This document shows, piece by piece, positions 548 to 62,906 of a stretch of DNA of 64,000 bases. The notes beneath the pieces are model-generated. The model searched no databases, had not been told where the DNA came from, and was given only the letters and a program-made list of their open reading frames with translations. The stretch covers positions 5,518,001 to 5,582,000 of the forward strand of contig OY740804.1 in assembly GCA_963514005.1 (NCBI GenBank). The letters run 5' to 3'. The stretch is from Raja brachyura. Its lineage: Eukaryota. The position numbers and the translations under genes are program-made. Position 1 is the stretch's first letter. Every line of letters starts with the position of its first letter.

Positions 548-594
548 CTGCATTTCATTGTTATATGCTCTGGGAGGTTTGTTCCCCTCTGATT
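548..594 (-). CDS. Receptor A first cytoplasmic exon (KSEGNKPPRAYNNEMQ); last exon lies beyond the window start
   Basis: 47 nt, phase 1-0, ttttccag|AATC...CAG|GTAAA. Same size and ends as the receptor B exon at 16048-16094. Confidence 0.8.
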
Positions 595-2065
595 CTGGAA
601 AACACAATGTTAACATTGAAAGGAGCATGTCAGGGACATTTTTAATCAGCCATCTTGCTGCATATAGAGTAGGAAGGAACTGCAGATGCTGGTTTAAACT
701 GAAGATGGACACAAAATGCTGGTGTAACTCAGTGGAACAGGCAGAACTCTGGAGAGAAGGAATTGATGACGTTTCAGGTTGAGACCCATCTTCAGACCGT
801 TCTCTCCAGAGATGCCTGTCCCGCTGATTTACTCCAGCATCTTGAGTCTATCTTTGGTGTATAACCAGCATCTGCAGTTCCTTCCTACTCTTTGATTCAT
901 GAGAACCACAGGGGCACCACAGGCCCAGTTCACCGCAAGCAGCACAATTCTGGTCAGGTTACTGCACTGAAAGTTCAAAAAGGATCAGATACAACCCTTC
1001 TTGATTAGTAGGGGCTTCCAAGTTTATGGGGAGATGGCAGGAGAATGGAGTTGAGAGGTAAAAAGTGAACACCCACGATTGATTAGCTCATTAATCAATA
1101 ACCCATCAATCTATGCTTTATATACTCAATGGCTTGATCTCCACAACTGTCTGTGACAATAAATTCCATGTGATTCACCACCCTCTGGCTAAAGAAATTC
1201 ATCCTCCACTCATTTCTATCATTCCACCTTTTTATCTGAGGCAATGCCCTCTGGTCCTAGTCTCTCTCACAGGTAGAACAAACCTCTCCACATCCGTTCT
1301 ATCTCATCCTTTCTATATTCCGTAAGTTTCAATGAGGTTCACCTCATCCTTCTAAACTCCAGTGAGTACAGGCCCAGTGCTGTATTTGACTAACTACAGC
1401 AGATTTTTGAGAAATCCTAATCCACACTTTCAAACACAACAGCTAATTTACTGAGATGTGTAGAAAGGAACTGCAGATGCTGACATTTACCGAAGATAGG
1501 CACAAAGTGCTGGAGTAACTCAGAATGAAGAAGGGTCCCAACCCGAAACTTCACTATTCCTTCTTCTCCAGAGATGCCACCTGACCTGTTTTTTACTCCA
1601 GCATTGTGTTTATCTAGCTAATTAGCCAAATTCCAGTTTTTGATAACTGGGAGGGTGGGGTGCAAGTAAATCTCACGTCTCCTCAACCTCTTCGTTCTAG
1701 TGCCATGGATCACGGACAAGTATTCACATACAAGGAATTTGCCTTGGTGCTCTGCCCGCAAGTGACAACGACAAACAGTGACAGTTAGGAATGACTGTTA
1801 AGAATGATAGTTTACACCAAAGATAGATACAAAGTAATAACTCAGTGGATCAGGCAGCATCTCTGGACGAAAAGGGTGGGTGACATTTCAGGCCGGGTCC
1901 CTTCTTCAGACTGGATAAGATTATTGTCGGACTAGAATAAAGAGATGGTTGATAATCAGCATGAAGTCGATGAGCCAAAGGGCCTGTTTCCGTGCTGTAT
2001 CTCCCACTCTCTGCAGGAAATTATCACATACATCATGAAAGGATGAAGGCAACATAGAAACTCAC

Positions 2066-2151
2066 TCCTTTGTCTACACTTTAGGCACCAAAGTAGACCA
2101 GCAACGATCACCAGGAGAAGAACTCCGGCAATACCGAGCCAAATTATGGGT
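2066..2151 (-). CDS. Receptor A transmembrane exon (PIIWLGIAGVLLLVIVAGLLWCLKCRQR), uncharged TM
   Basis: Phase 2-1, hydrophobic run then basic stop-transfer residues, donor GTGAGT. Confidence 0.88.
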
Positions 2152-2829
2152 CTATGGGACAGAAAAAGCAAAAAGGTTACACGTGTTTCATCATTGATTC
2201 TTATCCTTTGGTAAAGAACAAAAGTCTAACATCTGCAAGGTATCTTTCATGAGCTCAGGATAAGTCAAGCCCAGTGAATGGAGTGCAGACATTGCTATAA
2301 TGTGGTAAACACCAAAGCCAATCTACCCACAGCAAGTTCCACAAACAACAGTGCGATAACGACCAATGATTGTTTATGTTGGATAAAGAATAAACCCAAC
2401 TCAACCCAACAGTAGGGCAGCATGGAGTTGCTGCCTTACAGCTCCAGAGACCCAGGTTCAATCCAGACGACAGGTGCTATCTGTAAGGAGTTTTCATATT
2501 CTCCCTGTGATGAAGTGGGTTTACTCCAGTTGCTCCGGTTTTCTCCCTTATCACAAAAACGTGCGGGTTTGTGGGTTAATTGGCCTTGGTAAATTGCCCT
2601 TAATTTGTCGCGAGTGGATGAAAAAGCGGGATAACATAGATCTAATATGAAAGGATTTGTTTCCATGCTGTATCTCGAAACTAAAGTACAACTAAACTAA
2701 TTGTGTGTGAGATCTGGCCAGTGGCAATGTCAGTGGTAGATATATCTGCCGATTGGTTTACAAATACTCACAGCTTACAGATTTACAAAGGAAACACCCC
2801 TTGTTCAAAACCAGTGGACAGTCAATAAG

Positions 2830-3670
2830 TGTAGGAAGGAACTACAGATGCTGGTTTAAATCAAAGATAGACACAACATGCTGGAGTAACTCAACGGGGG
2901 AGGCAGCATCTCTGGAGAGAAGGAGTGGATGATGTTTGGGATTGAGACCCTTCTTCAGGGGAGAAGGAGAGACAGAGATAAGGAAGTGTAAGGTGTGAAA
3001 ATGAAACAAAGGGGGTGGTGATCACGGAAAATGTAGAATCGATCAGTGTTAGCTGGGAGACAGTAACAACAAAGTAAACAACGATAAAATATAATCGGGC
3101 ACAGTCAGACTGGTCGGAGTACTGGAAAAGGAGTGGGATCGAGAGTCAGAGAAAGCAAAGGTTACTTGTAGTTGGAGAAGTCAATATTCATACAGCTGGG
3201 GTGTAAGCTGCCCAATATGAGGTGCTGTTGCCCCTAATTTGCGCTGGGCCTCACTCTGATAAAGGAGGAGGCCCAGGACAGAAATGTAAGCGTGGGAATG
3301 GGAGGGGGAGTTAAAGTGTTTCCCACTGGGCGATCAGGTAGGTTTAGGCGGACTGAGCGAAGGAGGTCAGTGAAACGATCGGCAAGCCTGTGCTTGTTCT
3401 TGCCGATATATAGGAGTCCACACCTGCAACTGTAGATGAGGAGCTGCAAGTGAACATCTGCCTCACCTGAAAAAACTGTCAGGATCCTTGGACGGATTCG
3501 TGGGGGGAGATATATGGACATGTGTTGCATCTCCTGCAGCTGCAGGTGAAAGTACCTGGGGAGGGGTAGTTTGGGTGAGAAGGGATGAGTTAACCAGGGA
3601 GATGCAGAGGCAACGGTCTCTGCAGGAAGCAGAAAAGGGTGGAGATGGGAAGATGTGGCTAGTGGTGGGT
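2830..3670 (-). mobile_element. Penelope-like element 3' fragment (GIY-YIG endonuclease and terminal repeat)
   Basis: LIYSCRCGLLYIGKNKHRLADRF, followed by a hammerhead-type terminal repeat. Confidence 0.82.
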
Positions 3671-4764: not shown

Positions 4765-4867
4765 CTGTTAGGGAAACTGGGCGCAGTGGTTTCCGGATGA
4801 TTGGGTGTTACTTTTGTATTTGAAGTAAATGCTACTGTTGTAAACAATCCTGGATTAGATTTACGTT
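4765..4867 (-). CDS. Receptor A Ser/Thr/Pro-rich stalk exon (ERKSNPGLFTTVAFTSNTKVTPNHPETTAPSFPNR)
   Basis: Pyrimidine-rich acceptor, donor AG|GTATAA. Phase 1-2 joins V to TM in frame. Confidence 0.82.
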
Positions 4868-6180: not shown

Positions 6181-6189
6181 AAAACGTAC

Positions 6190-6510
6190 CTTCAGATACT
6201 TGGAGATGAACGTTAAACAATGTATCAAAGCCAGAGGTAGCAATTCCACAGCTGTACCATCCTGTATCTCCAGAGTGAAGATCCTCCACAGTCACCGTAA
6301 ATGTTCTTCGTGTCGAGTTATCTGTGATTAACACTCTTCCCTTCCGTCTGTGTTGTCCAATTGTTTTTACTACAATTGAACACCAGTGACTCCACCCATG
6401 ACACAAGTATTTTGTGTGTGAGTGGTACCGTGATTCATAGTGACAATCGATTGTGATATTTTTTCCCACAACTCCTCTTACAGATTTCTTTGCCCACAGA
6501 GCACCTGAAA
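6190..6510 (-). CDS. Receptor A V-set Ig exon (CD300/pIgR-like)
   Basis: 321 nt, phase 1-1. Motifs IDCHY, KYLC-x6-C (extra C-C' cysteines), FTVTVEDL, DTGWYSC. AG/GT ends. Confidence 0.93.
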
Positions 6511-10819: not shown

Positions 10820-10856
10820 CGGGCAGGGAATAAATGAGTAGAATTGGAATCCACAT
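10820..10856 (-). CDS. Receptor A exon 1, leader peptide MWIPILLIYSLP
   Basis: ATG at 10856, 37 nt, donor CCG|GTAAGT, phase 1. Homologous to three other leader exons in the window. Confidence 0.9.
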
Positions 10857-13800
10857 CGTCTTATCCAAGGAGACCATGTTAGCACTGATCTGCTGCTCAG
10901 CTCTTAGTCCCCAGACTGAACGGTCTGACAAATATGACATGTATTAAGAATGAGGAAGCAGGGAACAGGGAGCCTGATTGTGAAACCAGAATGAGACTGC
11001 TGATAAAATCTGAAACTTTAGAATTTGAAGTTGTCTCAGTTAAATTTAGTTCTGTTTAGTTTAGTAAACAGGCCCTTCGGCCCACCGACTCCATGCCGAT
11101 CAGCAATCCTCGCACATTAACGCTATCCTACACACACCAGGGACAATTTTTTACGTTCACCAAGCCAATTTACCTACATACCTGTATGTCTTTGGAGTGT
11201 AAAATAAAAGTAATCCAATTTTCATTGACTGATGAAAATAGTCCAGCCTTTTATTAATTTATTTTTTACTTTTAGAGATACAGTGTGGAAACAGGGCCTT
11301 CAACCCACCGAGTCCGCACCGACCAGCAATCACCCCGTATACACTAGCACTATCCTACACTTTAGACACAATTTACAATTTTTCTTACCAAAGTCAATCA
11401 ACCTACAAACCTGTTCGTCTTTGGGATGTGGGAGGAAACCAGAGCACCGGGAGGAAACCCATGTAGTCACAGGGAGAACGTACCAACTCTGCAGACAGCA
11501 ACCGTAGTCAGCATCGAATCCAGGTCTCTGGCGCTGTGAGGCAGCAGCTCTACCGCTGCTCCACTGTCCCACCCTAACAGTCAAGCCAAGCCAAGCCAAA
11601 TTTATTGTGATGTGCACAAGAACAGCGAGGCACAGGTACAATGAAAATCTTACTTTCAGCGACATCACAGGCACATATCAAAAAAATGTTTTAAAAAAAG
11701 CTAAATTCAACATAAATTCACTCTTGCTGTTGTTAATCTCGCAGCAATTAATCGCATGCTTACTGCAGGTACAGCTCTGTGGAATGTCAGTAAACCAGAC
11801 TACATAAAGCTTGGATAGACACAAAATGCTGGAGTAACTCAGCAGGACAGGCAGCAACTCTGGAGAGAAGGAATCTCCAGAGCTGCTGCCGGTCCTGCTG
11901 AGTTACTCCAGCATGTTGTGTCTATCTTTGATTAAAACCATCATCTGCAGTTCCTTTATACACATAAAGCTTGGATTATATTTAACTCGTGGCTGAAGGC
12001 CTGTGCTAACGATCCTTCTCATATTTAAGACAGTCTCCCATGTATTATTCTTTCATCACACTGTCTCATCCTATCTGTTACTGAAATTCATATCGAGTGT
12101 GTTGGCTGTTCCAGTGGTCTCTCGTGTAAGTTATCATCTTCCTCCCACCAAAAATTTAAGATCATCCAAATATCAGAATGCACACTAAACTGCACTCGGT
12201 AAACTCATTTATGGGGCGATACAGCATGGAAAAGGCCCTTCGGAACACAGAGTCCACAGCAGCCACTTTCGCATCCGCTCCCTACACACAAGGATGAATT
12301 TGCAGAGAGCCAATTTCCCTACAAACCCACACATCGTAGGGATGTGGGAGGAAATCCGTGCATCCAAAAGAAACGAACATTGTCACAGGGAGAACGTGCT
12401 AACTCCACACAGATAGCACCCAAGGTCAGGATCGAACCCGGAACTCCGATGCTATGAGGCAGCGGCTCTACCTGCTGTGCTAACGTGTGATTGTCTGACA
12501 TATCCTTCAACTTACCTTGCTGGCATGAACAAGGATTGAACCCTGGTTAGCAGCATGGGAGCTGCATGCTTGCAACCTGGCAAGCATGGAAACAGGCTTT
12601 TCGGCCCATACAGCATGGAAACAGGCTTTTCGGCCCACTGAGACTGCTCCAACCAGTGTTCACCCCATATACAATTTACCGTGCAAATTAACCTACAAAC
12701 CTGGAATGTGGGAGGAAACCGGAGCACCCAGAGAAAACCCATGCGGACACAGGGAGAACATACAAACTCCATACAGACAGCACCTGTCAGCATCAAACCT
12801 GGGTCTCTGGCGCTTTAAGGCAACAACTCTACCGCTGTGCCACTGTGTTCTACCTGAAACCCACTGACTTGCCAAGGCAAGGTGCTCTCCCTGAGCTAAC
12901 ATTCTTATACATGTTCTTACTGAATACTTCAGAACCAGGGAACATAGTTCGAGAACCAGAGGACATTGGTTTAAGGTGAGGGGAAAGATTTAATAGGAAC
13001 CTGAGGGAATCTGGACAGGATAGGTTTACAGAGATAATGGCCAAATTTCTTTAGTCAGAGGGTGGTGAATTTGTGGAATTTATTTCAACAGACGGCAGTG
13101 GAAGCCAAGTCAATTAATATTTTTTAGGCAGTGATTGACAGATTCCTGATTAGTGGGAGTGTCAGAGGTTACGGGGGGGAAGGCAGGAGAAGATAGATCA
13201 GCCATGATTGAATGGCAAACTTGATGGGCCGAAAGGTCTAATTCTGCACTTAGAACTTATTTACTTATGAACATTATATGTTTGTGGGTTTCTGTTGCAG
13301 TCATATTCTGAGAAAAGTAACACCAGTCTGAAGTAGGGTCATGACCTGAAATGTCATCTGTCCATTTCCTTTCCCAGACGTTGTTTGAAGGTTTTTTTTT
13401 GTGTTTAGCTCAACTGCTCATATTAACAGGAAGCACGTTGAGCACAGCCAGATGCAGCTCACACTCAATGTTTCATTCCATCGCAAGTTGGCCTTTGATG
13501 TGTTTGTACATTGACTGGAAATGTGTTCAAAACAAATAAATGTGTATTGTTGGGTGAACAAGTTAATGAACAAATATATCAGGCCCCATTCGGTCCTTCA
13601 AAACCACACCATGCATTAAAATCATAGCTTATCCTTTATCATGTCAATATCCAGTAATAGTTCTATTTCCATAGATCCTTTAATATCTAAGAAACAATTG
13701 TTCCCAGGCTAGATTGTATTGGAGTCATAGAGTCAAACAATGCAGAAACAGGCCCTTCGGACCAACTTACCCCTCCTCACTGCGCCTGGACAATTGAGCC

Positions 13801-15355
13801 AAGGAAAACCTCATCCCTTCACCTGCACTCTCCTGCTCAGTAAGAACTTTACATATTTCGAACATAGTACATCTAGAGTTGAGAAGACCATCTGTAGCAA
13901 TGCTGCTAAGACCAGCATTTCCAATCAAACTTTCTTCTGCTACAGAAATTGCCTTCTTTGTGGGGGGTTTCTGTGGTCACGATGGTTGAATCTTCTTGGT
14001 TTAGGATCTCACCCAGAAATTTGCAGTTCAGGCAGTGATGTACTCTACCAGTTGGCACTGAGGTGCTCGTAGGTCATGTGCTCATGTACTGGGGAGGGAC
14101 GTTGTAGACGGGAACATTTCACGGTGACTCTGGGCTTGTTTTCAGAAAAAATATTTTAATTTCAAATTGGCCAACTTTGGTTACACATGTCCTGGGGAAG
14201 ATGCCCTCAGATACAAAGCATTCAGTGCCTTTTACACAACCACATTTACATTACCTTCCTCTCGTTCCTCCAACTTGCATTCTCAGTGAGTATAAAAGAT
14301 AAAGGAATTCATGTATATTGCTCTGTTGTGCTGCAGCAAGTACATACTGTATGACAATACAACACACCTTACTCACTTCTTGCACTGTAATAGGCTATAA
14401 AAGCTATGAATAGTTCTGCAGTTCCACGCTACATTACTCCCCTTCCTTTGCCCATTTCCCCTTGGCTGCGCAGTATCTAGGGATCAGCTCACGTATGAAC
14501 ATTTTATTTGCAACTGGTCACTGAGGAAGTTAAAATCCAGTCTTGACCAAGTTTCAGTGAAGCCCCTTACCCAGGCTTGAGGATCATTTTACATCTTGGC
14601 CTTACCTTAGCCCACTGTCCACTTGAACCCATTTTGTTGCTTGATCCATTGCCCCTTTACGGACTTGAACCCACAGACAATGGGTTGTGGTGTGCTTAGA
14701 CAGACCCTTTGCAACAAATGATGATGGGAGGGTTGGGGAACTTGTGGATGGAGGGAATGAGAGTGGGTATGACAAGAATGGGAAGCAGTGCCAATTTATC
14801 ATTTGTATGCATGATCTAGGCTCATTCATTATACTGGCGGATGAAAGAGATTGGTGATGGTAGTGGAATTCATTAGGTCATTAGTGAAAGAAACAGACAA
14901 TTTGGCCCATCAAGGCTACTCCACCATTCTTTCATCGCTAATCTACCTCTCCCTCCTAACACCACTCTCCTGCCTTCTCCCCATCATCCCTGACACCTGA
15001 TGAATTGAACAAAACCGCTCAGAAAGAGCTGCACAAAGTATAGCTATAAAAAGATGCTGGTTTATACCAAAGACCAACCCAAAATGTTGGAGGAACTCGG
15101 ATGGTCAAGAAACATCTCTGGTGAAAATCGATTGGTATCAGTTTAGGTCAGGACCTTTCTACAGACCATCTGAAGAAGGGTTCCAACCTCAAAGGCCACC
15201 TGTCCATTTTCTCCAGAGTGGAGCGTGACTTGCTGAGTTACTCCAGTACTTTGTGCCCATCTTTAACAAAGTATAAAGCAGATTAATGCAGTGTAATCGG
15301 AACAGAGTGGTAAAGCAAGTATTGCCAAAAACTCACACCGAATTAAAAATCTCTC

Positions 15356-15631
15356 CTAAGAAACAACAGAGGCATAAATTGTCTCAGAGTTCTCTGGAGT
15401 CCCAGTAGATTGGGGTTTCCGATTTCCCTTTGGGCAGTTGCGATGAAAATTGACATCTGCATAGACTACAGCATTGTCAGTCACATGGTGCCTTGACCTC
15501 GACTTCCTTTGACAATTCACCACTGCATACGCGAGTTCACCTTCATTGTTATCCAAATGGTCAACTGCCCTGTTGTTTTCAAGTTGCTGCAGATTTGCAT
15601 AAACGTGGTTCCCTTCCAACACAGCCATTTC
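15356..15631 (-). CDS. Receptor B terminal cytoplasmic exon with ITIM/ITSM motifs
   Basis: Acceptor ttttag|GAA, phase 0. Motifs HVYANL, LAYAVV, VVYADV (ITIM-type) and TIYASV (ITSM). Stop at 15356-15358. Confidence 0.92.
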   Translation of the reverse strand, partial: EMAVLEGNHVYANLQQLENNRAVDHLDNNEGELAYAVVNCQRKSRSRHHVTDNAVVYADVNFHRNCPKGNRKPQSTGTPENSETIYASVVS

Positions 15632-16047: not shown

Positions 16048-16094
16048 CTGGATGTCATTGTTCTCTTCACCGTGTGATGTATTGCAATTGGATT
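16048..16094 (-). CDS. Receptor B first cytoplasmic exon (ESNCNTSHGEENNDIQ)
   Basis: 47 nt, phase 1-0, canonical splice sites, links TM to ITIM exon in frame. Confidence 0.87.
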
Positions 16095-18028: not shown

Positions 18029-18117
18029 CCTTGGTTTTACGCTTTCGGTACCAACAGAAGGCAATGATGAGAATCAGGAAAAGCACAGTGACACCAGGCG
18101 CAAATATGTAAGTGATC
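18029..18117 (-). CDS. Receptor B transmembrane exon (ITYIFAPGVTVLFLILIIAFCWYRKRKTK), uncharged TM
   Basis: 89 nt, phase 2-1, donor GG|GTGAGT. Not in the ORF track; translated by hand. Confidence 0.9.
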
Positions 18118-20273: not shown

Positions 20274-20322
20274 CATGAAGAATCATTGGATCCTTTCGAA
20301 GTTTCACAAGAATATCCATGTC
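20274..20322 (-). CDS. Receptor B stalk exon (GHGYSCETSKGSNDSSW)
   Basis: 49 nt, phase 1-2, acceptor ttccttattccaacag, donor GTAAAC. Bridges C2 to TM in frame. Confidence 0.8.
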
Positions 20323-22583: not shown

Positions 22584-22904
22584 CAGTGCCGTTGATTTTC
22601 ACTAAGAAACTGCAGCGAACATCACTGCTGGAGATGGACACGTTGACCATTTCACTGGATTTTGCTCCATTATTATTTGAGGCTGTGCAATAATATTGAT
22701 GGTGCTGGTGTTTGAAGGATTGACAATGTAGATCCAGGGAATTGTTGTCTGAGATATTTGAATCCACTGATGGGGTCTTTTCATACCAGGTGTAGCTAAT
22801 TGGAAGGGAACCCCTGACCGACTCACAGGACAGGGTCACTGAGCCCACGTGACAGGAGACATTGGCTAGTGACAGAAATCCAAGCACAGGAACAGACACG
22901 GGGT
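22584..22904 (-). CDS. Receptor B membrane-proximal C2-type Ig exon (type b)
   Basis: 321 nt, phase 1-1. SVTLSCESVRGSLPISYTWY...QYYCTASN is an FcR/FCRL/PECAM-like pattern. Confidence 0.92.
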
Positions 22905-28606: not shown

Positions 28607-28924
28607 CTTCGGATACTTGGAGATGTACTTTAAATGTTGGTTTGCCAGGTGTAGTAATTCCACAACTGTACCATCCTGTATCTCCAGAGTGAAGATCCTC
28701 CACAGTCACAGTAAATATTCCTCGCGCCAAGTTATCTGTTATTGACACTCTTCCGCTCGGTCCATATTTCCCATTTGTTTCCACTACATGTGTACACTGG
28801 GGACTTGTCCCAGCGCACCAGTATTTTGTGTCTGAGCGGTAAACTGCTGCATAGTGACAATCGATTGTGATCGTTCTTCCCACAACCCCGCTTACTTCGC
28901 TCTCAGCCCACAGTGCACCTGAAA
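28607..28924 (-). CDS. Receptor B V-set Ig exon (V2 type)
   Basis: 318 nt, phase 1-1. IDCHY, KYWC-x6-C, DTGWYSC. Donor AAG|GTAAGT. Confidence 0.93.
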
Positions 28925-30260: not shown

Positions 30261-30263
30261 CAA

Positions 30264-32960: not shown

Positions 32961-33281
32961 CTGTATTGTTGATTTCTGTCACATAACTGCACGTTCCTGC
33001 TCCTTTGAAGACTTTCACGTTGAGTATTTCACTGGGTTTTGTCCCACCATTATTTGAGGCTGTGCAGAAATATTGATTTATTTGACCTCCGAGGATTTCA
33101 CAACTCAGATCCAGTTGATTGCCAGAGGAGATCTGTGACCACCCATACTTGTTCTTCTCACACCATGTGTAATGGATGGGAAGGGATCCACGGACAGACT
33201 CACACGACACTGACACTGAGCCTCCGAGACGTGAGGCATTTGCTGGTGACAGAAATCTGAGCACAGGAGCAGACATGGGTT
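32961..33281 (-). CDS. Receptor B distal C2-type Ig exon (type a)
   Basis: 321 nt, phase 1-1, open frame. SVSCESVRGSLPIHYTWC...QYFCTASN. Donor CAG|GTGAGT. Confidence 0.88.
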
Positions 33282-35264: not shown

Positions 35265-35313
35265 CGTCAGATACTTGGAGATGTACAGAAAATATTGGAT
35301 GGTCGGCAGATGT
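35265..35313 (-). pseudogene. Remnant 3' end of receptor B first V exon (TSADHPIFSVHLQVSD); acceptor and most of the exon deleted
   Basis: Matches the 3' end and donor of the V exon at 62159. At 35314 it jumps to sequence matching the paralogous intron near 43615. Confidence 0.88.
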
Positions 35314-35740
35314 GACTTTACCTTACACTAAACGTTTCCTTTTCGTGTATCTATGCACTGTATGAGGATCGATTGTAATCATGTGTAGTCTTTATGCTGC
35401 TGGTTAGCACGCAACCAAAAAGCGTGTTGCTGCAACTGGGTCCACGTGACAATAAACTATGCTGAACTGGGAGCCAAATGTCCCGCTGCTCATCGGGGAC
35501 AGTTTCTATTCTCAATTTGAACTATCATCATGATTCAATTAGACCACGTGTCAACAGTGGTTAAACTACGAATATAGTCTAGATAATCAAATGTGATTTC
35601 AGATCCATCAACATAACGCACTGGCTTTCATTTCTCCCATTACATGTCTACACATAACTAACCATCTCTGCTGTGGAAAGGGTGCACGGAACCCCAACTA
35701 ACATTGATCATTGGACTATCAACATCTGGTTTTCACTCAC

Positions 35741-35777
35741 CGGGCAGCGAGGAGATGAGAAGAATGGGAAACCACAT
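35741..35777 (-). CDS. Receptor B leader exon MWFPILLISSLP
   Basis: 37 nt, ATG at 35777, donor CCG|GTGAGT. Confidence 0.85.
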
Positions 35778-36164
35778 TGTTTTATCCATAGTTACAAGGC
35801 CAGCACTTGTCTGCCTGTCACTCATCTTTGAGCTCTCAGATACAACCGCATCTCTCAATTAGCAATGAGAAAGAAAGGAACAGGAGGTCAGATCGTGAAC
35901 CACAGCGAGCCAGCAGCAGCTCGACACGTTTTAGTGTGAAAGGCTCAGGGTTATATTTCGCAAATGGTTGGGTCAGATGATCACAGAATCACACAGCACG
36001 GAAACAGGCCCTTCTCCCCGACTCGTTAGACCAATATGCTCATCTAAGTTAGTCAAATTTGTCCACGTTCGACCCATATCTCCACAAACCTTCCCTATCA
36101 ATGAACCCGTCCAAGTGCCCATTACATGTCGTTATTGCATCTGCTTCAACCACTTCGTCAAGTC

Positions 36165-37689: not shown

Positions 37690-37920
37690 TACTGGATTTT
37701 GTCTAATAATATTGATGATGTTCGCGTTTGAAGGAATGACAATGTAGATCCAAGGCATAGTTGTCTGAGACCTTTGTGTCCACAGGTGGGTTATTTTCAT
37801 ACCAGGTGTGGTTAATGGGAAGGGATCCCCGGAAAGACTCACAGGACACAGTCACTGAGCCCCCGAGACAGGAGACATTGGCTGGTGACAGAAATCCAAG
37901 CACAGAAACAGACAGGGGTT
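37690..37920 (-). pseudogene. Receptor C inactivated C2 (type b) exon
   Basis: Acceptor AG changed to AA. A deletion removes the F-strand Cys, giving QYY-stop. The 3' part is replaced by a repeat. Confidence 0.88.
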
Positions 37921-38496
37921 TTACGGGAAAGGAGCAGATAGTCAGGCACTGAGTGAACATCTGAAAAAGGGACACTTCATCTTCCACCTCATCTGTATCT
38001 CAGCCTCAGGCGCCAGGTTGGAATCTTTCATATGGTCACAGAGCCATATAGCGTAGAAACTGGCCCTTCCCCCCAAATTTCCCGCGCTGACCAACACACC
38101 CAATCGACACTCGTCTTACCAGCCCGTGCTTGGCTCATAACCATCTAAACCTATACTATTCATGTTCTTGTCCAAACGTTTCAGAAACGTTGCGATTTTA
38201 CCGGCCTCAACTACCTCCGTCAGTAGCTCATATACCAAGCACCCATTGTGTAAAAAAAGTTACTCCCCAGGATCTTGTTACATCATTACCCCCTCAACTT
38301 AAAACAATGTCCTCTGGTTCTCGATTCACCTACTCCAGGCAAAAGGCTGTGTGCATTGACTTGATTTATTCCTCGTATGATTGTATACACTTCTATAAGA
38401 TCACCACTCACTATCTTTCCTATAACATGTTGACTAAAACTGATCACAAATCAGACAAATCATGAGATAAACCTTGGTTTCTCTTTTATATGTCAG

Positions 38497-39300: not shown

Positions 39301-39618
39301 CTTCAGATACTTGGAGATGTACTTTAAATGTTGGTTCGCCAGGTGCAGTAATTCCACAACGGTACCATCCTGTATCACCAGAGTGAAGATCCTCCACGGT
39401 CACAGTAAATATTCCTCTTGCCGGGTTATCTGTGATTGACACTCCTCCGCTCTCTCCATGTTTCCCATTTGTTTCCACTACATGTGTACACTGGCGACTT
39501 GTCCCAGGGCACCAGTATTTTGTGTGTGAGTGGTACACTGCTGCATAGTGACAATCGATTGCGATCGCTCTTCCCACAACCCCGCTTACTTCGCTCTCTG
39601 CCCACAGTGCACCTGAAA
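39301..39618 (-). CDS. Receptor C second V exon (V2 type)
   Basis: 318 nt, open, close paralog of 28607-28924. Donor weakened to AAG|GTAGCT. Confidence 0.82.
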
Positions 39619-40649: not shown

Positions 40650-40970
40650 CTGCATTGTTCATTTCTGTCACATAACTGCACGTTCCTGCTCCTTTTAAAA
40701 CTTTCACGTTGAGTATTTCACTGGGTTTTGTCCCACCATTATTTGACGCTGTGCAGTAATATTGACGGTTTTGACCTCCGAGGATTTCACAACTCAGATC
40801 CAGTTGATTGCCCGAGGAGATCTGTGACCACCCATACTTGTTCTTCTCACACCATGTGTAGTGGATGGGAAGGGATCCACGGACAGACTCACACGACACT
40901 GACACTGAGCCTCCGAGACGTGAGGCATTTGCTGGTGACAGATATCTGAGCACAGGAGCAGACACGGGTT
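40650..40970 (-). CDS. Receptor C C2 exon (type a)
   Basis: 321 nt, open, phase 1-1, close paralog of 32961-33281. Confidence 0.88.
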
Positions 40971-42656: not shown

Positions 42657-42977
42657 CGTCAGATACTTGCAGATTGAGTTTAATCATTGGATCCCAGCCA
42701 GATTTATAAATTCCACAGCTGTACCGCCCTGCATCTCCAGAGCGAAGATCCACCACAGTCACAGTAAATATTCCTCGTGCCGGGTTATCTGTGATTGACA
42801 CTCTTCCATTCCGTCCGTATTGCCTATTTGTTTCCACTAAAACGCTACACAGGTCAGTCCGCACACGGCACCAGTATTTTGTGTGTGAGTGGTACTCTGC
42901 TGCATAGTGACAATCGATTGTGATCGCTCTTCCCACAACTCCTCTTACATCCTTCTCTCCCCACACTGCACCTGAAA
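42657..42977 (-). CDS. Receptor C first V exon (V1 type)
   Basis: 321 nt, open. IDCHY, KYWC-x6-C, DAGRYSCGIYKSGWDPM. Confidence 0.92.
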
Positions 42978-44172: not shown

Positions 44173-44209
44173 CGGGCAGCGAGGAGATGAGAAGAATGGG
44201 GATCCACAT
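44173..44209 (-). CDS. Receptor C leader exon MWIPILLISSLP
   Basis: 37 nt, ATG at 44209, donor CCG|GTGAGT. Confidence 0.9.
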
Positions 44210-52300: not shown

Positions 52301-52432
52301 TTTTGCTATTTGCATCCCTCGCCCCAACCATTCTAGTTTAAAGTCTCCCCAGTGGCCTTTGCAAATTTCCCCGCCAGGATATTGGTCTCCCTCGGGTTCA
52401 AGTGCAACCCATCCTTTCTGTACAGGTCCCAC
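49388..52432 (-). pseudogene. CR1 ORF2: APE endonuclease and reverse transcriptase, with a single in-frame TAG at 49745-49747
   Basis: NARS, SETW, GDFN, SDH; PGPD, NYRPVSL, GVPQGSVLGP, YADD. The frame continues after the stop to 49388. Confidence 0.95.
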
Positions 52433-53269
52433 CTACCCCAAAAGAAGTCCCAATGATCCAGAAACTTGAATCCCTGCCCTCTGCACCAGTCTTTCAGCCA
52501 AGCATTTATCCTCCACCTTGCTCCATTTCTACTCTCACTGTCACGTGGCACAGGCAGTAATCCTGAGATTATTACCTTTTTGGTCCTTTTCCTCAACTCT
52601 CCTCCCAAGTCCTTAAATCCTCCCTTCAGGACCTCTTCCCTTTTTTTACCTATGTCATTGGTACCTATATGTACCACGACCTCAGGCTCCTCTCCCTCTG
52701 ATTTGAGGATATCTTGGACACGTTTAGACACGTCCAAGACCTTGGCACCAGGGAGGCAGACCACCATCCTGGTCTCCCGACTGCGTCCACAGAATCGCCT
52801 ATCCGACCCCCTAACAATAGAGTCCCCAATTACTATTGCCCTCCTCTTTTTCCCCCTACCTTTCGGAGCAACAGGGCCGGTCTCTGTGCTGAAGGCCCGT
52901 CCGCTGTCGCTACCCCCGGGTAGGCTGTCACCCCCATCCGTACTCAAACAGGAGTACTTATTTGCCAGGTGTACTGACATTGGAGTACTCACTCGTTCAT
53001 GCCTCTGCCCCTTGCCCTTCCTTAGCGTGACCCACATGTCTCCACTCCTGTGGTTTTGGAGTGACCACCTCCCTATAACTCTCCTCTATCACCTTTTCAC
53101 TCTCCCTGACCAGGCAGAGGTCATCGAGCTGCTGCTCCAGGATCCTAATACGGTCCCTTAGGAGCCCCATCTCTCTGCACCTGATGCAGACGTGGACGTC
53201 AAGAGGGCCATCCGACACCATGACCTCCCACATCTGACATGCAGTACAGTACACTGCTCTGGCTGACAT
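52333..53269 (-). pseudogene. CR1 ORF1: Cys-rich zinc finger, coiled coil and SGNH esterase, with one frameshift near 53040
   Basis: CTAC...HVCIRC, LEQQLDDL, then IGDS, HIGTND, DGLH in a shifted frame. Confidence 0.9.
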
Positions 53270-53544: not shown

Positions 53545-54542
53545 CCCTGACCCTCCTCCACTCGCTCCAACGGTCCCGGGCCTCTGCCTGAACAAGCCCC
53601 GCGCTGGATTTATCTACTCACCGCCCCTGACCCTCCTCCACTCGCTCCAACGGTCCCGGGCCTCTGCCTGAGCAAGCCCCGCGCTGGGTTTATGTACTCA
53701 CCGCTCCTGACCCTCCTCCACTCGCTCCAACAGTCCCGGGCCTCTGCCTGAGCAAGCCCCGCGCTGGGTTTATGTACTCACTGCTCCTGACCCTCCTTCA
53801 CTCGCTCCAACGGTCCCGGGCCTCTGCCTGAGCAAGCCCCGCGCTGGATTTATCTACTCGCCGCTCCTGACCCTCCTCCACTCGCACCAACGGTCCCGGG
53901 CCTCTGCCTGAACAAGCCCCGCGCTGGGTTTATGTACTCACCGCTCCTGACCCTCCTCCACTCGCACCAACGGTCCCGGGCCTCTGCCTGAACAAGCCCC
54001 GCGCTGGGTTTATGTACTCACCGCTCCTGACCCTCCTCCACTCGCACCAACGGTCCCGGGCCTCTGCCTGAACAAGCCCCGCGCTGGGTTTATGTACTCA
54101 CCGCTCCTGACCCTCCTCCACTCGCACCAACGGTCCCGGGCCTCTGCCTGAACAAGCCCCGCGCTGGGTTTATGCACTCACCGCTCCTGACCCTCCTCCA
54201 CTCGCTCCAACGGTCCCGGGCCTCTGCCTGAGCAAGCCCCGCACTGGATTTATCTACTCACCGCTCCTGACCCTCCTCCACTCGCTCCAACGGTCCCGGG
54301 CCTCTGCCTGAGGAAGCCCCGCGCTGGATTTATCTACTCACCGCTCCTGACCCTCCTCCACTCGCACCAACGGTCCCGGGCCTCTGCCTGAACAAGGCCC
54401 GCGCTGGGTTTATGTACTCACCGCTCCTGACCCTCCTCCACTTGCACCAACGGTCCCGGGCCTCTGCCTGAACAAGCCCCGCGCTGGGTTTATGTACTCA
54501 CCGCTCCTGACCCTCCTCCACTCGCACCAACGGTCCCGGGCC
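53545..54542. repeat. Tandem array of about 12.5 x 80-bp GC-rich monomers forming the CR1 5' end
   Basis: ccctcctcca (ccctccttca at 53791) recurs every 80 bp from 53551 to 54511 (13 occurrences), with few substitutions. Confidence 0.97.
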
Positions 54543-55997
54543 TTAGAATTTGGAAACAAATAAAATGAACCCTTAAATTACGAAATTTATCACTTCTCAC
54601 CCCTATAGTCAATAATCCGTCCTTTAAACTTTCTAGTATTGATAACTCATTTACATATTGGGAAAGAATAGGAATTAAAACGTTCGGAGACATGTATGAA
54701 AATGGAAATTTCTTATCATTCCAACAACTACAACTTAAATACAACCTGAGAAGTAATCAATATTTTAAATATTTTCAGGTTCGTGATTACTTGAGAAAAA
54801 ATATACACTTGAATATCAAAATTTGTCTCCAGACTTATTAGACGAAGCAATTAATATAAAGGCAGATTCAACTAATTTAATATCATATTTGTATAATATT
54901 ATCCTAAATATAGAAATACCATCATCTGATAGAATTAGAAGAGATTGGAAACACGAACTAGCTATAAAAATCTCGAAAGAGTGTTGGGATAAACACTTGC
55001 TATATGTGCACAAATGCTCGATCAATGTAAGACATATTTTAATCCAATTTAAAACTTTACATAGACTATTATTCCAAAACTCAAATAAGTAATTTTTTTC
55101 CAAATGTCTCCCCAATTTGTGATAAATGTCTATCCAAAGAAGCAACCATAACCCATTCCTTTGTTTTTTGCATACAAATCCAAAAATTCTGGAATGAAAT
55201 CGTTGAAATTTTTACAAAATTATTCAAAATAAAATTGAAACTGAATGCAGATTTGATTATTTTTGGAACAATGGAAGCCAGCTTTGAGCTGACTTCGTTC
55301 CAAAAGAGCTTCCTTAATTATGGCTTAATAATGGCAAAAACCTTATACTTAAATTCTGGAAAAAAGCTCCCACACCAACGATAAAAATGTGGTTTTCAAA
55401 CATGTCCGAAATGTTACACCTAGAAGATATGAGATTCCTCCTAGCAGGCAAATCATACCATTTCCAAAAGATTTGGTCTCCATTTATCGACTTATTACAA
55501 GCACAGGGTGCAACACAACTCTGAAAATGAATGGTATCAGGACCTGGTGAGGGGGGTGTAAAGATACGAAGTAGGTACATCCCTTTTACCTTAGCTTATT
55601 TTACTTTCTTATATTTTCTGTCTTCTATTTTTTTAATCTTTCTTTTCCTTTATTTTTCTTTTTTAGTCTTTCTTGTGTCTTATGCTTCTATGGGTTCTTC
55701 CTGATCACTCTTTCACGCACTTACTATCCTGTCTAATTCTCTCTATTCTTCTTCTTATTCTTCTACTTCTTAAAGTATAAAATAAGTAGTGGTACAGGAA
55801 ATGTATTATGTTATTTTTGGCTTGTATCATTGTAATGTACATTACTTCTAATAAAGAAAATTAAAACTAATAATAATAATATAGTTTAACTGAATATAAA
55901 ACTCGGCAACAGCAGAAACCACGCAAAGGTTAAAACAATAGTTCGAAGCAGACGAAAGAAACCTTGGAAGGGGTGACAAAAATTAAGATGGTGCAAG

Positions 55998-56055
55998 CTA
56001 GGAGTCTTCATTGTAATTCGGGGGACGAGTGGCGAGGTTCTGATTCATCGCGTCT
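55998..56055 (-). CDS. Receptor D probable last coding exon (RDAMNQNLATRPPNYNEDS*)
   Basis: Acceptor ttctcattgtctattgcag. Phase 2 matches the previous exon. TAG at 55998-56000. Confidence 0.6.
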
Positions 56056-56671: not shown

Positions 56672-56762
56672 CTTAGAGCCTCTTGTGAACACCGCGGTTG
56701 AGATGCTCCAGATCACAAGCAGGAGAAAGAACAGCCAGCGCTCCACTCTCCATGAGATGTAA
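56672..56762 (-). CDS. Receptor D transmembrane exon with Arg (YISWRVERWLFFLLLVIWSISTAVFTRGSK)
   Basis: 91 nt, phase 2-0, strong acceptor, donor AAG|GTAGGT. Arg at the N-terminal end of the hydrophobic run. Confidence 0.82.
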
Positions 56763-56830: not shown

Positions 56831-56864
56831 CTGTTATTTGCTTCATAGTTTTGGTGAAGTGGAG
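56831..56864 (-). CDS. Receptor D short stalk exon (APLHQNYEANNS)
   Basis: 34 nt, phase 1-2, donor CAG|GTAAAT. Joins C2 to TM in frame. The following intron is only 68 nt. Confidence 0.6.
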
Positions 56865-58022: not shown

Positions 58023-59506
58023 CCACAATGAGATGTAAACCTAGTGTGATTCCGCTTCTGACGAGTTAAGTAATAACTGGTTTGCAAGTTATGTACGTAT
58101 TATTAAAGAATATTTAATAGATACATTTATATTTGGTGTCAGGCTTGCAACATGTACAAAAAGTGATTATACTTTCTGACATTTGCGAGCATTGGATCAA
58201 AGACGCATAGAGACACTCAGTATAGAACCAGGGCAATTGGCCCTTCAGGTCTGTGCCGACAGTCAACTGCATTCACATAAATCCTGTGTCAATCCCATTT
58301 TTATTTCGCCCACTTTCTCATCAACTACCACTACCGCCCAACACCCTCCCCCTCCCCCGCCCCACACCCTATCCACCCTGTACACATGGGCCAATTTACA
58401 ATTGGCACCTCATTGGGAGCTGTGAGAAAACTGGAGCACTTCCCCCTGCATTCCAAAGTCGTGCAGGTTTGTAGGTTAATTGGCTTATGTTAACTGTCCC
58501 CATGGAACTAGTGTATTGGTGATTACTGGACGGTGTGCCTCAGTGGGCCAAAAAGTTTGTTTCTGTGCTATATCCATATACTAATCTTAAGGGTGTAATA
58601 ACACTTGAGATGAGTATTGCTTGGAATGTAACATTACAATTATGGGGAGGGGCTGGATAGAGGTTTTATAAAAGTCGATTCAGGACAGGCGAGGAAGGGA
58701 GAATCTATTACAGGGGTGCAAAACTGTGAGCAGCATAGATCGGGTATTATTGGGACATTTTGCACGGCAGATATTTGTAAGACCTATATTTTATTTGTCG
58801 ATTAAGTTATGATAGCGGATGGAAGTTGCAAACCAAATCTCGTTGCACTTATGTGTAATGACAATTAAATATATTATTATTATTATTATTATTGCCACAA
58901 TGGACGAGGTGCTGGTAAATGGGATTAGTTTCGATGGTACTGAATGGTCAACATTAACACAGAGGACCAAATCAGATACCGTCGTCAAGGTGTTATCTGT
59001 GGCCACATTTACTTATCATTTCTGATCCCTTCCCATATCTGAGGGCCGGTTATGTGCAGATGATGGTGGGAAAGTGAAAGTGCTTGGACTGATGTCACTG
59101 CAAACCTAGTCTTAAAGCTGTGTAAACATAAGAGAAAGTTGTAGCCGGGAGGCTGTCCTACACTGAGAAATCTATGCCTGGAGCCCAGCAACCAAGTATT
59201 GACAAATAGGACATAATTCCATAATTTTAATCTTGATAAGTTAATTACATAACGTGCATGAAATTCAGGGTATCGAGGGTTATGGGGAGAAGGCAGGAGA
59301 ATGGGGTGAAGGGAAGATTGATCAGCCACGATTGAAAGGTCTACTTCTCTTGTGATCTTATGAACCACCACACTCCCACTTCCTAATTGGAAGGGATCCC
59401 CGCATCGACTCACAGGACACTGTGATCTCTGCTACTATCTCTTGTGATCTTATGAACCACCACACTCCCACTTCCCCTTCTTCTCCTCATTTTCTCCACG
59501 ACTTAC

Positions 59507-59827
59507 CAGTGCCGATGATTTTCACTAGAAAACTGCAGGGCACGCCACTGCTGGAGATGGACACGTTGACGATTTCACTGGATTTTGATCCATCAATATT
59601 GGAGGCTGTGCAATAATATTGATGGTGCAGGTGTTTGAAGGATTGACAATGTAGATCCAGGGCATTGTTGTCTGAGATCTTTGAATTCACAGATGTGGCA
59701 TTTTCATACCAGCTGTAGCTAATTGGAAGGGATCCCCGCATCGACTCACAGGACACTGTCAATGACCCACCGAGACAGGATAAATTGGCTGGTGACAGAA
59801 ATCTAAGCACAGGAGCAGACACGGGTT
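59507..59827 (-). CDS. Receptor D C2 exon (type b)
   Basis: 321 nt, open, phase 1-1, paralog of 22584-22904, donor GTAAGT. Confidence 0.92.
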
Positions 59828-60499
59828 CTGTGGGAAAGGGGCAAACAGACAGACACTGAGTGAACATCTGAAAATCAAACACTCGCCAATATCCACCATC
59901 TCCGTATCTTAGCCAGGGCTGCCAGGTTGGAGTCTGATCCATCCATCTACAGAGTCATACGGTGAAACACCATAGAAACAGGCCCTTCGGTTTCAGATGT
60001 TCATATGTTATTGAGGTTGAACTTGGGCGAATTATGTTCAGCTTCAGCCACTCAGCTGTACCAATCATCCCACTACAGTCAATGACACTTTACTATCCCC
60101 CTCTTTAAATAATTCCCATTACCTCTGTCCTCCACTTCCTCATCCCACACTTCGTGGGAAAATGAATATGCTTCGCGTGATTACTACATTTCCATACTAC
60201 CTCGCTCAATCATTTCCACAGCAAGGAATGAAGTCTGTAACAATCTGTCCCTGCGTTAATCGCACCCTGTCCAGGCAGCCCTAAAACCTTTCTGCACGCT
60301 GTCCACCTTAACGGCACTTTACTTGGAGCTGAGGGACTAAAGCTGAACACAATTCCCAAAATGTGGACTCAACATCTGAAGCATATTGTCTCAAATTCTG
60401 TTCTGAATGTTCTCACTGATGAAGACCAGCGTGCCAAAACGTCTACTTAATGCCTTTGAATTTAAAGCCGAAAATTAATTACAATCCCTTTAAGATAGA

Positions 60500-61590
60500 C
60501 AAAAAAAAAGCTGGAGTAATTCAACGGAGCAGGCAGCATCTCTCGACAGAAGGAATGGGTGACGTTTCGGGTCGAGACCCTTCTTCAGTCTGAGAGTCAT
60601 GGGAAAGGGAAACAGAAGCGAAATGGAAGGGTAAGGTGTGAAAACAAATGAACAAAGGTGAAAATGTAAAAATAAAATGTAGAGTGGATCATTGTCAGCT
60701 GAATGGAAGGTGAAAACGAGGCATACAATCAGTAAAATATAATCAGAAAGACAGTGAAACTAAATGGCACACTAGGACGGGGCGGGATGCCGACAGGAGT
60801 AAAGCAAGGGCTACTTGAAGATAGAGAAGTCAATATTCTAACCGCTGGGTGTCAGCTGCCCAAGCGAAATATGAGGTACTGTTCCTCCAATTTGCGTTTG
60901 GCCTTCCTCTGACAATGGAGGAGGTCCAGGACAGAAAGGTCAGTTTGGGAATGGGAGGGGGAGTTAGTGTTTAACAATCGGGAAGTAGCGTAGGCCGAGG
61001 CAGACTGGGCGGAGTTGATCAGCGAAACGATCGCCGAGCCCGAGATATAGTCTCCCCTCTACTATATCCGCTTGTTCACACCTGGAACAGCGGACAGAGT
61101 AAATGAGGTTCGACGAGATGCAAGTGAACCTCTGCCTCACCCGAAAAGACTGTTGGACTCCTTTGACGGAGTGGACGGGGGAGGTATAGGGACAGGTGTT
61201 GCATCTGCTGCAGTTGTAGGGGAAGGTACCTGGGGACGGGGTGGTGACCAGGGATTTACGGAAGGAAAGGTCTCTTCGGAAGCAGAAGGCAGTGGAGATG
61301 GAAAGATGTGGCCTCACACGAAAAGACTGTTGGAAACCTTGGGCGGAGTAGACGGAGGAGGTATGGAGACAGATGATGCATCTCCTGCAGTTGTTAGGGA
61401 AGGTACCTGGGAGGGGGTGGTTTGGATGGGAAAGGGCGAGTTGACCAGGGAGTTACGGGGGGAACGGTCTCTTCGGAAAGTAGAATGTGGTGGAGATGGA
61501 AAGATGAGGTCAGTTGTGGGATCCTATTAGAGGTGGCAAAAATGTAGGAGGATTATGTGCTCTGTGCGAATGGAGCGAAAGATGAATTTA
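60500..61590 (-). mobile_element. Penelope-like fragment with an internal tandem duplication of about 180 bp
   Basis: CSRCNTC...FTCISSNLIYSVRCSRC. 61135-61312 is repeated at 61312-61507. Terminal repeat at 60500-60590. Confidence 0.8.
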
Positions 61591-62158
61591 TTCTGCTTAC
61601 CTCCGGGGAAATGGCCGGGTGGAGAGGCTGGATGACTACCGAGCGGTGGGTGGACAGTGGCTGCTGGGGGTGGGGGCGCATTGACGGGGCAGAGGGAGAG
61701 AGAGAGAACGCGGGGTGGGGAGGGAGTGACTGATCCCTGAGGTGGGGGCGGGGAGCGGCCTCGCCTGCCCCCGGAGGACTGAACGAAGTCTGTTGAGCTC
61801 TGGGGACTGATTCCCTGTTTATTATTCTCCGGGTATTCAGATCCCGAGCACCACTTGTTTCTCACTGATCTGTCGGATTATTAGTTTGAGTCGGAATGCA
61901 AACCCCTGACAGGGTGATATTTCATACAGTTCAGAGGGAGGGAAATGTGCTGAGCATCCCACTTGAAGTGGGTGGCCGCTCAGTGGGACAGAGCCCGCAC
62001 TGGGTGAGAGCAACATGAGTGGGGTTTCCCGACCCCCGCCCGCTCCCCGCAGGTATCTGCACTTATGCGGAGATATCGGTGCTGCCCTGACCCTTCCCGG
62101 AGAAAACATGGATCAGGCATTTCAGCGGAGACGTGAAGTCAATCACTGCGAAACGTAC

Positions 62159-62473
62159 CGTAAGCTACTTGGAGATGTACGGAAAATATTGGATTGGTGG
62201 CAGATGTTGTAATTCCACAGCTGTACCATCCTGTATCTCTGGAGTGAAGATCCTCCACACTCACAGTAAATATTCCTCGTGCCGTGTTGTCTGTGATTGA
62301 CACTCTTCTTCTCCGTCCGTATTGCCCATTTGTTTCCACCATATCTGTACATTGGCGAGTCCGCACACGGCACCAGTATTTTGTGTATGAGTGGTACTCT
62401 GCTGCATAGTGACAATCGATTGTGATCGCTCTTCCCACAACTCCTCTTACATACGTCTCTCCCCACACTGTAT
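62159..62473 (-). CDS. Receptor D V exon (V1 type)
   Basis: 315 nt, open. The upstream AG seen in paralogs is lost; the in-frame tttcag acceptor 6 nt on remains. KYWC-x6-C, DTGWYSC. Confidence 0.9.
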
Positions 62474-62869
62474 CTGAAATGGAGGGGAGAAACTTTCAGA
62501 TGGAGAGCAAATAAACTGTTTAATGGAAATAGATACATTTTAAAGATTACATGAAAGAAAACTTAAATCGTTCCATGATGTGTCATATTGCTTCACGGCC
62601 AACGTCTCCGGTCTGAGTGCAGGCAGTGCTGTTGTTGTACCAGTTGTGTCAGTGTTCTGTCCCCGGGTCAGTACAACTTGGGTTCACTTCCCACTCCAGA
62701 TTCCTGAGCAGAAACTGGGCTGGGATCGCAGTGCGGTACTGAGGGAGCGCGGCTGTGTTGCAGGAGCTGCCTTTCAGCAATCCCAGGCGGTGCCCGGCCT
62801 CACACAAATACCTCACTTTGCTATTTCATACATTGATCATTGGAATATCTAGATCTGGCTTTCACTCAC

Positions 62870-62906
62870 CGGGGAGCAAGGAGATTAAAAGAATGGGAAT
62901 CCACAT
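62870..62906 (-). CDS. Receptor D leader exon MWIPILLISLLP
   Basis: 37 nt, ATG at 62906, donor CCG|GTGAGT. Confidence 0.9.

Follow-up and report, generated by a model that had tools for sequence, protein, structure and literature searches.

The genes discussed here lie in a 64-kb window of the skate Raja brachyura (contig OY740804.1, positions 5,518,001 to 5,582,000), which, judged by its exon sequences, is very probably part of a large gene cluster of MDIRs (modular domain immune-type receptors). Two adjacent units of this window, here called C and B, are the two copies produced by one tandem duplication of a receptor gene with the immunoglobulin (Ig) domain order V-C2b-V-C2a; on the minus strand, unit D precedes and unit A follows them. 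The exons and their phases, the duplication, the relic exons and the membership of the MDIR family are resolved by the analysis, in which searches were run exon by exon or with database proteins as stored. The window contains no runs of N, has a GC content of 40-53% and abundant retroelement fragments, and is vertebrate-like.

A six-frame search with the exons of the initial annotation located Ig exons exclusively on the minus strand, five of the V type and five of the C2 type in strict alternation. Read 5' to 3' on this strand, they comprise in D a V exon at 62.4 kb and a C2 exon at 59.8 kb; in C, V at 42.9 kb, C2 at 40.9 kb, V at 39.6 kb and C2 at 37.9 kb; in B, a V fragment at 35.3 kb followed by C2 at 33.2 kb, V at 28.9 kb and C2 at 22.9 kb; and in A a V exon at 6.5 kb. 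An AG acceptor, a GT donor, a length of 312-321 nucleotides (nt) and phase 1-1 are common to all five V exons and to four of the five C2 exons, and the motif K-Y-W/L-C-x6-C is present in every V exon. Four V exons, that of D being the exception, possess an extra acceptor 6 nt upstream, which accounts for the 'VSG' found ahead of each V domain in cloned MDIR proteins. Each V exon runs on into a short open read-through that ends with a stop codon. Homologous leader exons, four in number, open the four units (Table 1); within the window no leader exon is located ahead of the V exons at 39.6 and 28.9 kb. This survey of exons and splice sites agrees with the initial annotation, which had proposed four minus-strand units with common leader, V and C2 exons, all in phase 1.

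The stalk, transmembrane (TM) and tail exons were located by mapping database relatives onto the window and by local alignment. Phase 1-1 symmetry is the usual rule for Ig exons, and it allows changes of layout without being a proof of shuffling. In the MDIR family, on the other hand, stalk exons run from phase 1 to phase 2 and TM exons begin in phase 2, so that an Ig exon joined directly to a TM exon causes a frameshift.

With respect to family membership, the V exons are recognized as Pfam V-set (E 1e-8 to 1e-13) and the C2 exons score just below the thresholds of Pfam Ig_3/Ig_2. The best solved match of the V exons in a PDB sequence search is pIgR (E 4e-46 over five domains, with all four cysteines aligned), and further matches are CD300f (3e-19), NKp44 (8e-7), TLT-1 (about 1e-6) and TREM2 (about 1e-6 to 2e-6), which upholds the earlier placement of the KYWC-x6-C domains in the CD300/pIgR/TREM group. 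Both C2 subtypes have FCRL5 as their best match among solved structures (E 2e-46 and 5e-44 over six domains). A HMMER scan with the V exon of D retrieved 2260 proteins at E<=0.001, headed by skate and ray proteins. For comparison 247 family proteins were retrieved, the named MDIRs among those compared being MDIR2, MDIR3 and MDIR5 of the clearnose skate Rostroraja eglanteria, which are among the best matches and among the closest named proteins. Identity per exon amounts to 75-93% to the R. eglanteria MDIRs and to RefSeq models of Amblyraja, Leucoraja and Rhinoraja. No retrieved protein is more than 93% identical to any exon of the window over at least 80% of its length, the exception being C's leader, 12 residues long and found unchanged in several of them; the window's species seems to be without annotated proteins in the libraries searched. 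In V and C2 domain trees, the per-domain phylogenies that the initial annotation had proposed, the internal V, C2b and C2a exons group with the domain subfamilies of MDIR3 and MDIR5 and fall within their V and C2 subclades. Together with an exon-by-exon identity of 77-93% to MDIR3/MDIR5, this confirms the MDIR identity that had been suspected. The description of the genes as uncharacterised stands for this species and for their function; it does not stand for the family, which is RefSeq-annotated in at least four skates and rays.

MDIRs carry Ig domains similar to those of CD300, pIgR and TREM/TLT (PMC3031540), and so do the V exons of the window. Domain number varies, with one-, two-, three- and, for C and B taken together, six-domain layouts, all built from few subfamilies (A-type V, N-terminal V, internal V, C2b and C2a). 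As to members with immunoreceptor tyrosine-based inhibitory motifs (ITIMs) and members with a charged TM, the ITIMs of B are clear and the basic TM exon of D is intact, its in-frame use being predicted only. The family is said to have been described from skates by Cannon et al. in 2006.

Other receptor families fit less well. Mammalian CD300 (CMRF35-like) proteins have a V domain with an extra C-C' disulfide as here and paired ITIM and charged-TM members, and their layout of a single V, stalk and TM would correspond to that of gene A; to our knowledge CD300 proteins never carry C2 domains, and a single V without any other Ig domain is found in gene A only, as B, C and D have C2 exons. The polymeric immunoglobulin receptor pIgR shares the cysteine pattern of the V exons, but consists of tandem V-type domains without C2 and has a tail with sorting signals and not ITIMs, whereas V and C2 alternate in the window and the tail of B has ITIMs. 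FCRL proteins such as FCRL5 match the C2 exons and also have tails with ITIMs, but their C2/I-type ectodomains lack the CD300/pIgR-type V domain of which every unit here has at least one exon. Relatives are named in RefSeq as pIgR-like, FCRL5(-like), CMRF35-like, CXADR-like or TRIM69 fusion, names which stem from fused models and from hits to domains, 'pIgR-like' signalling no more than a similarity of domains.

The closest known counterpart of B is MDIR3 of R. eglanteria (P0157, 701 aa), a non-identical gene of a different species, which has the same leader, internal V (88-90% identity), C2b (77-79%) and C2a (82%) in the same order, followed by the same stalk, an uncharged TM (86%), cytoplasmic exon 1 (93%) and an ITIM tail (77%) with three conserved Tyr motifs. 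MDIR3 has the five domains V-V-C2b-V-C2a, whereas B has lost its first V and is preceded by the partial copy C. The counterpart of the membrane part of D is MDIR5 (P0171, 501 aa), the basic TM exon of which (SYISWKVGRWLLF...) is 90% identical to that of D and the short tail of which (...HELQ) is 75% identical. The ectodomain of MDIR5 is V-C2b-V-C2a, as inferred for the ancestor of C and B, while D has only V-C2a; furthermore, the 16-residue stalk GHEYSCENPITSSYSA closes the reading frame in MDIR5 and no counterpart of it was detected in D.

The duplication itself is evident from the comparison of the window with itself, in which positions 22689-37566 and 37705-45459 are collinear copies, 85-88% identical through the introns. 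Three 5' regions (35.3-37.6, 42.4-45.5 and 61.8-64.0 kb) are mutually homologous. One boundary of the duplication falls within the C2a exon. As the DNA of the C and B copies differs by 12-15%, the duplication is not an assembly artefact. DNA contigs over 33000-38999 match unique parts at 99-100% in two organisms; among these short contigs, none was shown to bridge the breakpoints 35313 or 37705.

Relic exons on both sides reveal the common origin of the two layouts. The C2a relic at the end of C has lost its acceptor (CACAG to CGTAA), has a TAG at the codon of the F-strand Cys, and its 3' part is replaced by a repeat; the donor is missing. The 57-nt V remnant of B is preceded by a purine-rich tract poorly suited as an acceptor, and it has no credible acceptor. 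It follows from these two relics that both 'V-C2-V' in C and 'C2-V-C2' in B derive from V-C2b-V-C2a. These two layouts, reported for C and B by the initial annotation, correctly describe the intact exons, but they are not original architectures. V-C2b-V-C2a is also the layout of the cloned MDIR5 and of models from chimaera, catshark, sawfish and stingray.

The duplicated segment would have begun at the promoter and ended halfway through the C2a exon of an MDIR3-type V-C2b-V-C2a-stalk-TM-ITIM gene. The upstream copy C has no membrane and tail exons of its own and a truncated C2a that can no longer be spliced, and the downstream copy B has lost most of its first V exon and kept all parts for an inhibitory receptor. 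The notion of freely swappable V and C2 modules does not hold for this pair, which goes back to one segmental duplication (85-88% identity) followed by exon deletion and decay. A degraded retrotransposon of the non-LTR (long terminal repeat) type, with broken reverse transcriptase and endonuclease open reading frames (ORFs), occupies 24308-27542 (-) in the intron between V and C2a of B and accounts for much of the difference in size between the B and C copies.

The structure of the pair raises the question whether C and B are one gene or two. No TM or tail exon for C is present before the 5' region of B starts. After the phase 1 donor of the second V exon of C, the next usable acceptor is that of the C2b exon of B, as the relics between them are without acceptors, and the predicted splice between the two is in frame. 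Starting from the C leader, a six-domain V-C2b-V-C2b-V-C2a-stalk-TM-ITIM receptor would be possible, and starting from the B leader a three-domain C2b-V-C2a form; both products are conceivable because every intact Ig exon is of phase 1-1. The six-domain layout of C and B read as one gene is that of a Rhinoraja longicauda protein annotated as 'polymeric immunoglobulin receptor-like' (XP_078277138.1; P0003, 809 aa). In the C2 tree the two C2b domains of P0003 are sisters (SH-aLRT 89), as are the two C2b exons of the window (SH-aLRT 95), and thus the duplications were independent or the copies were homogenised within each species.

That C and B are instead separate genes, with C a soluble or non-functional V-C2-V, B a C2-V-C2 receptor expressed from its own leader and no transcript linking them, is a serious possibility, although we consider it the less probable one. 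The B leader is intact, and the sequence on its 5' side shares 86-89% identity with the flanks of C and D, so that a copy of the promoter is probable; at about 12% neutral divergence, however, a leader of 49 nt can be intact by chance. Polyadenylation in the intron after the second V exon of C would yield a soluble V-C2b-V through the open read-through and its stop, yet precisely the sites that would disturb a transcript from C to B are gone from the relic exons between the two units. None of the three retrieved clearnose skate MDIRs (MDIR2, MDIR3 and MDIR5) begins with a C2 domain, and of the two RefSeq models that do so, or that begin close to C2b, P0199 is partial and P0040 is fused to a TRIM gene. 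The six-domain layout present in Rhinoraja is a further point against separate genes; the B leader could be used as well.

Hydrophobic open stretches follow the C2b exons in both copies (40498-40649 (-) in C, about 50 codons; 32866-32960 (-) in B, shorter). As an alternative membrane anchor the stretch at 40649-40498 was rejected: a canonical GTGAGT donor precedes it, the copy in B is interrupted, and none of the 247 relatives has it; these stretches are probably read-through noise.

The transcription of these genes, their splice choices, the coupling to adaptors and phosphatases and the ligands are inferred. In the exons of B, a neutral TM and four Tyr motifs (YANL, LAYAVV, VVYADV and TIYASV) are present as initially annotated; LAYAVV, VVYADV and TIYASV are conserved in relatives, and TIYASV fits the consensus of the immunoreceptor tyrosine-based switch motif (ITSM). 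Upon ligand binding by the V domains, phosphorylation of the ITIM/ITSM tyrosines would recruit phosphatases (SHP/SHIP) and lead to inhibition. D, on the other hand, has a TM exon with Arg and a short tail free of Tyr, so that the earlier description of an Arg TM without ITIM is accurate at the level of exons. D would join a V-C2a ectodomain to an MDIR5-type TM with the conserved W-x-V-x-R-W motif and a 15-residue tail. In mammalian paired receptors, those coupled to FcR-gamma pair by a basic TM residue with an acidic residue of the adaptor. If read in frame, the basic residue at the outer TM end of D would similarly pair with the acidic residue of an adaptor with an immunoreceptor tyrosine-based activation motif (ITAM), which would make D the activating partner of B. 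The basic TM motif W-x-V-x-R-W occurs in frame in 39 of the 247 family proteins; the authors of the 2006 MDIR description reportedly did not count MDIR5 as an activating form.

Several observations weigh against this account. The first Tyr motif of the B tail, YANL, is not conserved in relatives, and in our judgement the junction of the B leader to C2b gives a poor context for signal-peptide cleavage (...SSLP/EP...). In D, the basic residues (in the sequence WRVERW of the TM exon) are located at the outer edge of the hydrophobic stretch and could be flanking rather than intramembrane. The C2 exon of D ends in phase 1 and the TM exon starts in phase 2, and no homologue of the stalk exon was found between them (59506-56763) by tblastn, local alignment, blastn or motif search. 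This TM exon is read out of frame by three RefSeq models, P0004 and P0179 (Leucoraja) and P0005 (Amblyraja), all of which end in VTSHGKWGAGCSFSCL, and with the absent stalk these models suggest that D may be soluble. Of the proposed paired locus, an ITIM member next to a basic-TM member is thus retained, while 'activating' for D is putative, as the frame from C2 to TM is closed by a candidate exon only.

This candidate is an open 34-nt AG...GT segment located 66 nt upstream of the TM exon, the sole one that would correct the phase, and unless it is used D is secreted. Such candidates have a chance frequency of about 1.25 per kb, with one lying 40-150 nt upstream of about 11% of positions. We give somewhat less than even weight to the alternative that D is not activating, its stalk having been lost and C2 splicing onto the TM exon with a frameshift to give a secreted V-C2 protein that ends in VTSHGEWSAGCSFSCL, as a soluble decoy or the product of a decaying gene. 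The failure of protein, DNA and motif searches to detect a stalk-like exon and the chance level of the 34-nt candidate speak for it, as does the common out-of-frame end of P0004, P0179 and P0005, of which P0005 and P0179 are the nearest relatives of D in the V tree. The TM exon is nevertheless open in the TM frame at its high identity to MDIR5, and the tail exon has kept its acceptor, frame and a stop at the MDIR5 position, which is not expected for long if translation stopped within the TM exon. The in-frame motif of the 39 relatives likewise speaks against secretion, and two further models read the TM exon in the third frame, which suggests trouble of annotation rather than biology. Gene predictors often overlook exons of 34-49 nt. 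On balance, the exon sequences make the membrane form of D slightly more likely than the secreted form.

A more far-reaching proposal can be made only tentatively and is rather unlikely as a whole: that C and B would encode a six-domain ITIM receptor that arose by duplication and trimming, independently of that in Rhinoraja, and that D and its relatives in Leucoraja and Amblyraja would be soluble decoys which arose by loss of the 49-nt stalk exon and the consequent frameshift of the TM exon. If true, the C/B pair shows growth of domain number in progress: the duplicated segment would have comprised a promoter, a leader and four Ig exons, and in the trimming the C2a relic would have been deprived of its acceptor and the V relic of its 5' half, with only in-frame phase 1-1 exons remaining.

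The origin of D can be traced in part by self-comparison. Its C2 exon and downstream intron match the C2a of B (59445-59999 versus 22522-23075), and the intron upstream matches that upstream of the C2b exons (59991-60472 versus 41380-41882), a pattern that would fit unequal recombination between a C2b and a C2a exon with deletion of the C2b-V part. True exon shuffling, in which non-homologous recombination joins V and C2 exons of different genes, is an improbable source of the layouts: D does look mosaic, with a C2b-like upstream intron and a C2a-like exon and downstream intron, and the V-C2a introns of B and C contain inverted relics of the A-type tail, but the unequal homologous recombination just described would leave the pattern of D too, C and B are collinear over their full length, and the order V-C2-V-C2 has been kept from chimaera to skates.

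The V domains would be the likely ligand-binding parts, alternating with FCRL-like C2 domains. For paralogous exons, dN/dS is 0.5-0.8 in most comparisons (range 0.5-1.4, with about 100 codons per exon); values of about 1.0-1.1 were obtained for the V exons of A and D and for the first and second V of C, while the comparison of D with C at the N-terminal V exon gave the highest value, 1.39. At about 100 codons each, this pattern is suggestive of a fast-evolving ligand-binding domain.

Gene A had been described as V only, but it also has a stalk, a neutral TM and a first cytoplasmic exon before it leaves the window. By its exons it is predicted to be a CD300-like membrane receptor with a single V, a stalk and an uncharged TM, its tail lying off the window, and it is probably inhibitory, because ITIM-like motifs are present in the Rhinoraja counterpart. 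On the opposite strand, at 23611-23815 (+) and 38365-38769 (+), the V-C2a introns of B and its duplicate C harbour inverted relics of an A-type ITIM tail exon (...SIVYATV...NQTVYGVQFQRKST...); these contain a frameshift and are 70-83% identical to the tail found in the A-like portion of Rhinoraja P0001. Between the end of B and the A leader, positions 14570-14649 (-) resemble the N-terminus of the Amblyraja model P0005 (MDQA..WVQVD.GLR), and this stretch may represent a repeat through which that model was read, or else a non-coding exon located upstream.

Table 1. Exons, exon relics and a candidate exon of units D, C, B and A, in minus-strand order.
Unit	Feature	Position	Strand	Remark
D	leader exon MDKTMWIPILLISLLP, phase-1 donor GTGAGT	62870..62918	-	
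D	V exon, CD300/pIgR type, 315 nt, phase 1-1	62159..62473	-	
D	C2 exon, C2a subtype, FCRL-like, 321 nt, phase 1-1	59507..59827	-	
D	candidate 34-nt mini-exon, phase 1 to 2	56831..56864	-	chance-level
D	TM exon, basic residues including Arg (SYISWRVERWLFF..., YISWRVERWLFFLLLVIWSISTAVFTRGSK, YISWRVERWLFF...), phase 2 to 0	56672..56762	-	90% identical to MDIR5
D	last coding exon RRDESEPRHSSPELQ, then stop, no Tyr	56008..56055	-	75% identical to MDIR5 tail
C	leader exon MWIPILLISSLP, upstream ATG of the MDKT form lost	44173..44209	-	
C	first V exon, phase 1-1, with tandem acceptors at a spacing of 6 nt	42657..42977	-	
C	C2 exon, C2b subtype, phase 1-1	40650..40970	-	
C	second V exon, internal V subtype	39301..39618	-	90% identical to MDIR3 domain 4
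C	dead C2a relic, end of unit	37706..37930	-	at duplication boundary
B	leader exon MDKTMWFPILLISSLP, intact	35741..35789	-	5' flank homologous to C and D flanks
B	57-nt remnant of first V exon	35265..35321	-	donor kept
B	C2 exon, C2b subtype	32961..33281	-	92% protein identity to C2b of C (exon alone)
B	V exon, internal V subtype	28607..28924	-	
B	C2 exon, C2a subtype	22584..22904	-	
B	stalk exon GHGYSCETSKGSNDSSW, 49 nt, phase 1 to 2	20274..20322	-	
B	TM exon, uncharged ITYIFAPGVTVLFLILIIAFCWYRKRKTK, phase 2 to 1	18029..18117	-	
B	cytoplasmic exon 1 ESNCNTSHGEENNDIQ	16048..16094	-	93% identical to MDIR3
B	last exon: YANL, ITIMs LAYAVV and VVYADV, C-terminal TIYASV, stop	15359..15631	-	
A	leader exon MVSLDKTMWIPILLIYSLP	10820..10877	-	homology to other leaders
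A	V exon, own V subtype common to skate 'CMRF35-like' models	6190..6510	-	domain tree
A	stalk exon, Ser/Thr/Pro-rich, 103 nt, phase 1 to 2	4765..4867	-	
A	TM exon, uncharged, phase 2 to 1	2066..2151	-	
A	cytoplasmic exon 1 ESEGNKPPRAYNNEMQ	548..594	-	last exon beyond window

Further observations concern the surroundings of D. A 48-nt copy of an internal piece of its C2 exon (ITVSCESMRGSLPI) is located about 75 nt downstream of the exon itself, within the intron (59385-59432 (-)). Downstream of the last coding exon, a long non-LTR retrotransposon at 49388-53269 (-) has an apparently open ORF2 of 895 aa with endonuclease and reverse transcriptase and an ORF1 with a GDSL esterase-like domain; after this element, at 53546-54543, comes an 80-bp tandem repeat with 12.5 copies that are 96% alike.

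Automatic gene models for the MDIR family are unreliable, because neighbouring genes are fused and one TM exon is read in three frames. Several RefSeq models are fusions of neighbouring genes, P0040 with a TRIM gene, and the basic TM exon is read in all three frames by P0004, P0005, P0179, P0046 and P0195 (Leucoraja, Amblyraja, Pristis and Rhinoraja). The practical gain of the present analysis is precise gene models to test, and no new principle.

Of the paired innate receptors known to unite CD300/pIgR-type with FcR-like domains, MDIRs are among the oldest, and they are known mostly from cDNAs. The locus gives an exon-level picture of how the 'modular' layouts of this family arise, the ingredients being symmetric phase-1 Ig exons and a recent tandem duplication with relic exons, with the asymmetric stalk (phase 1 to 2) and TM exons (phase 2 to 1 or 2 to 0) acting as a frame lock.

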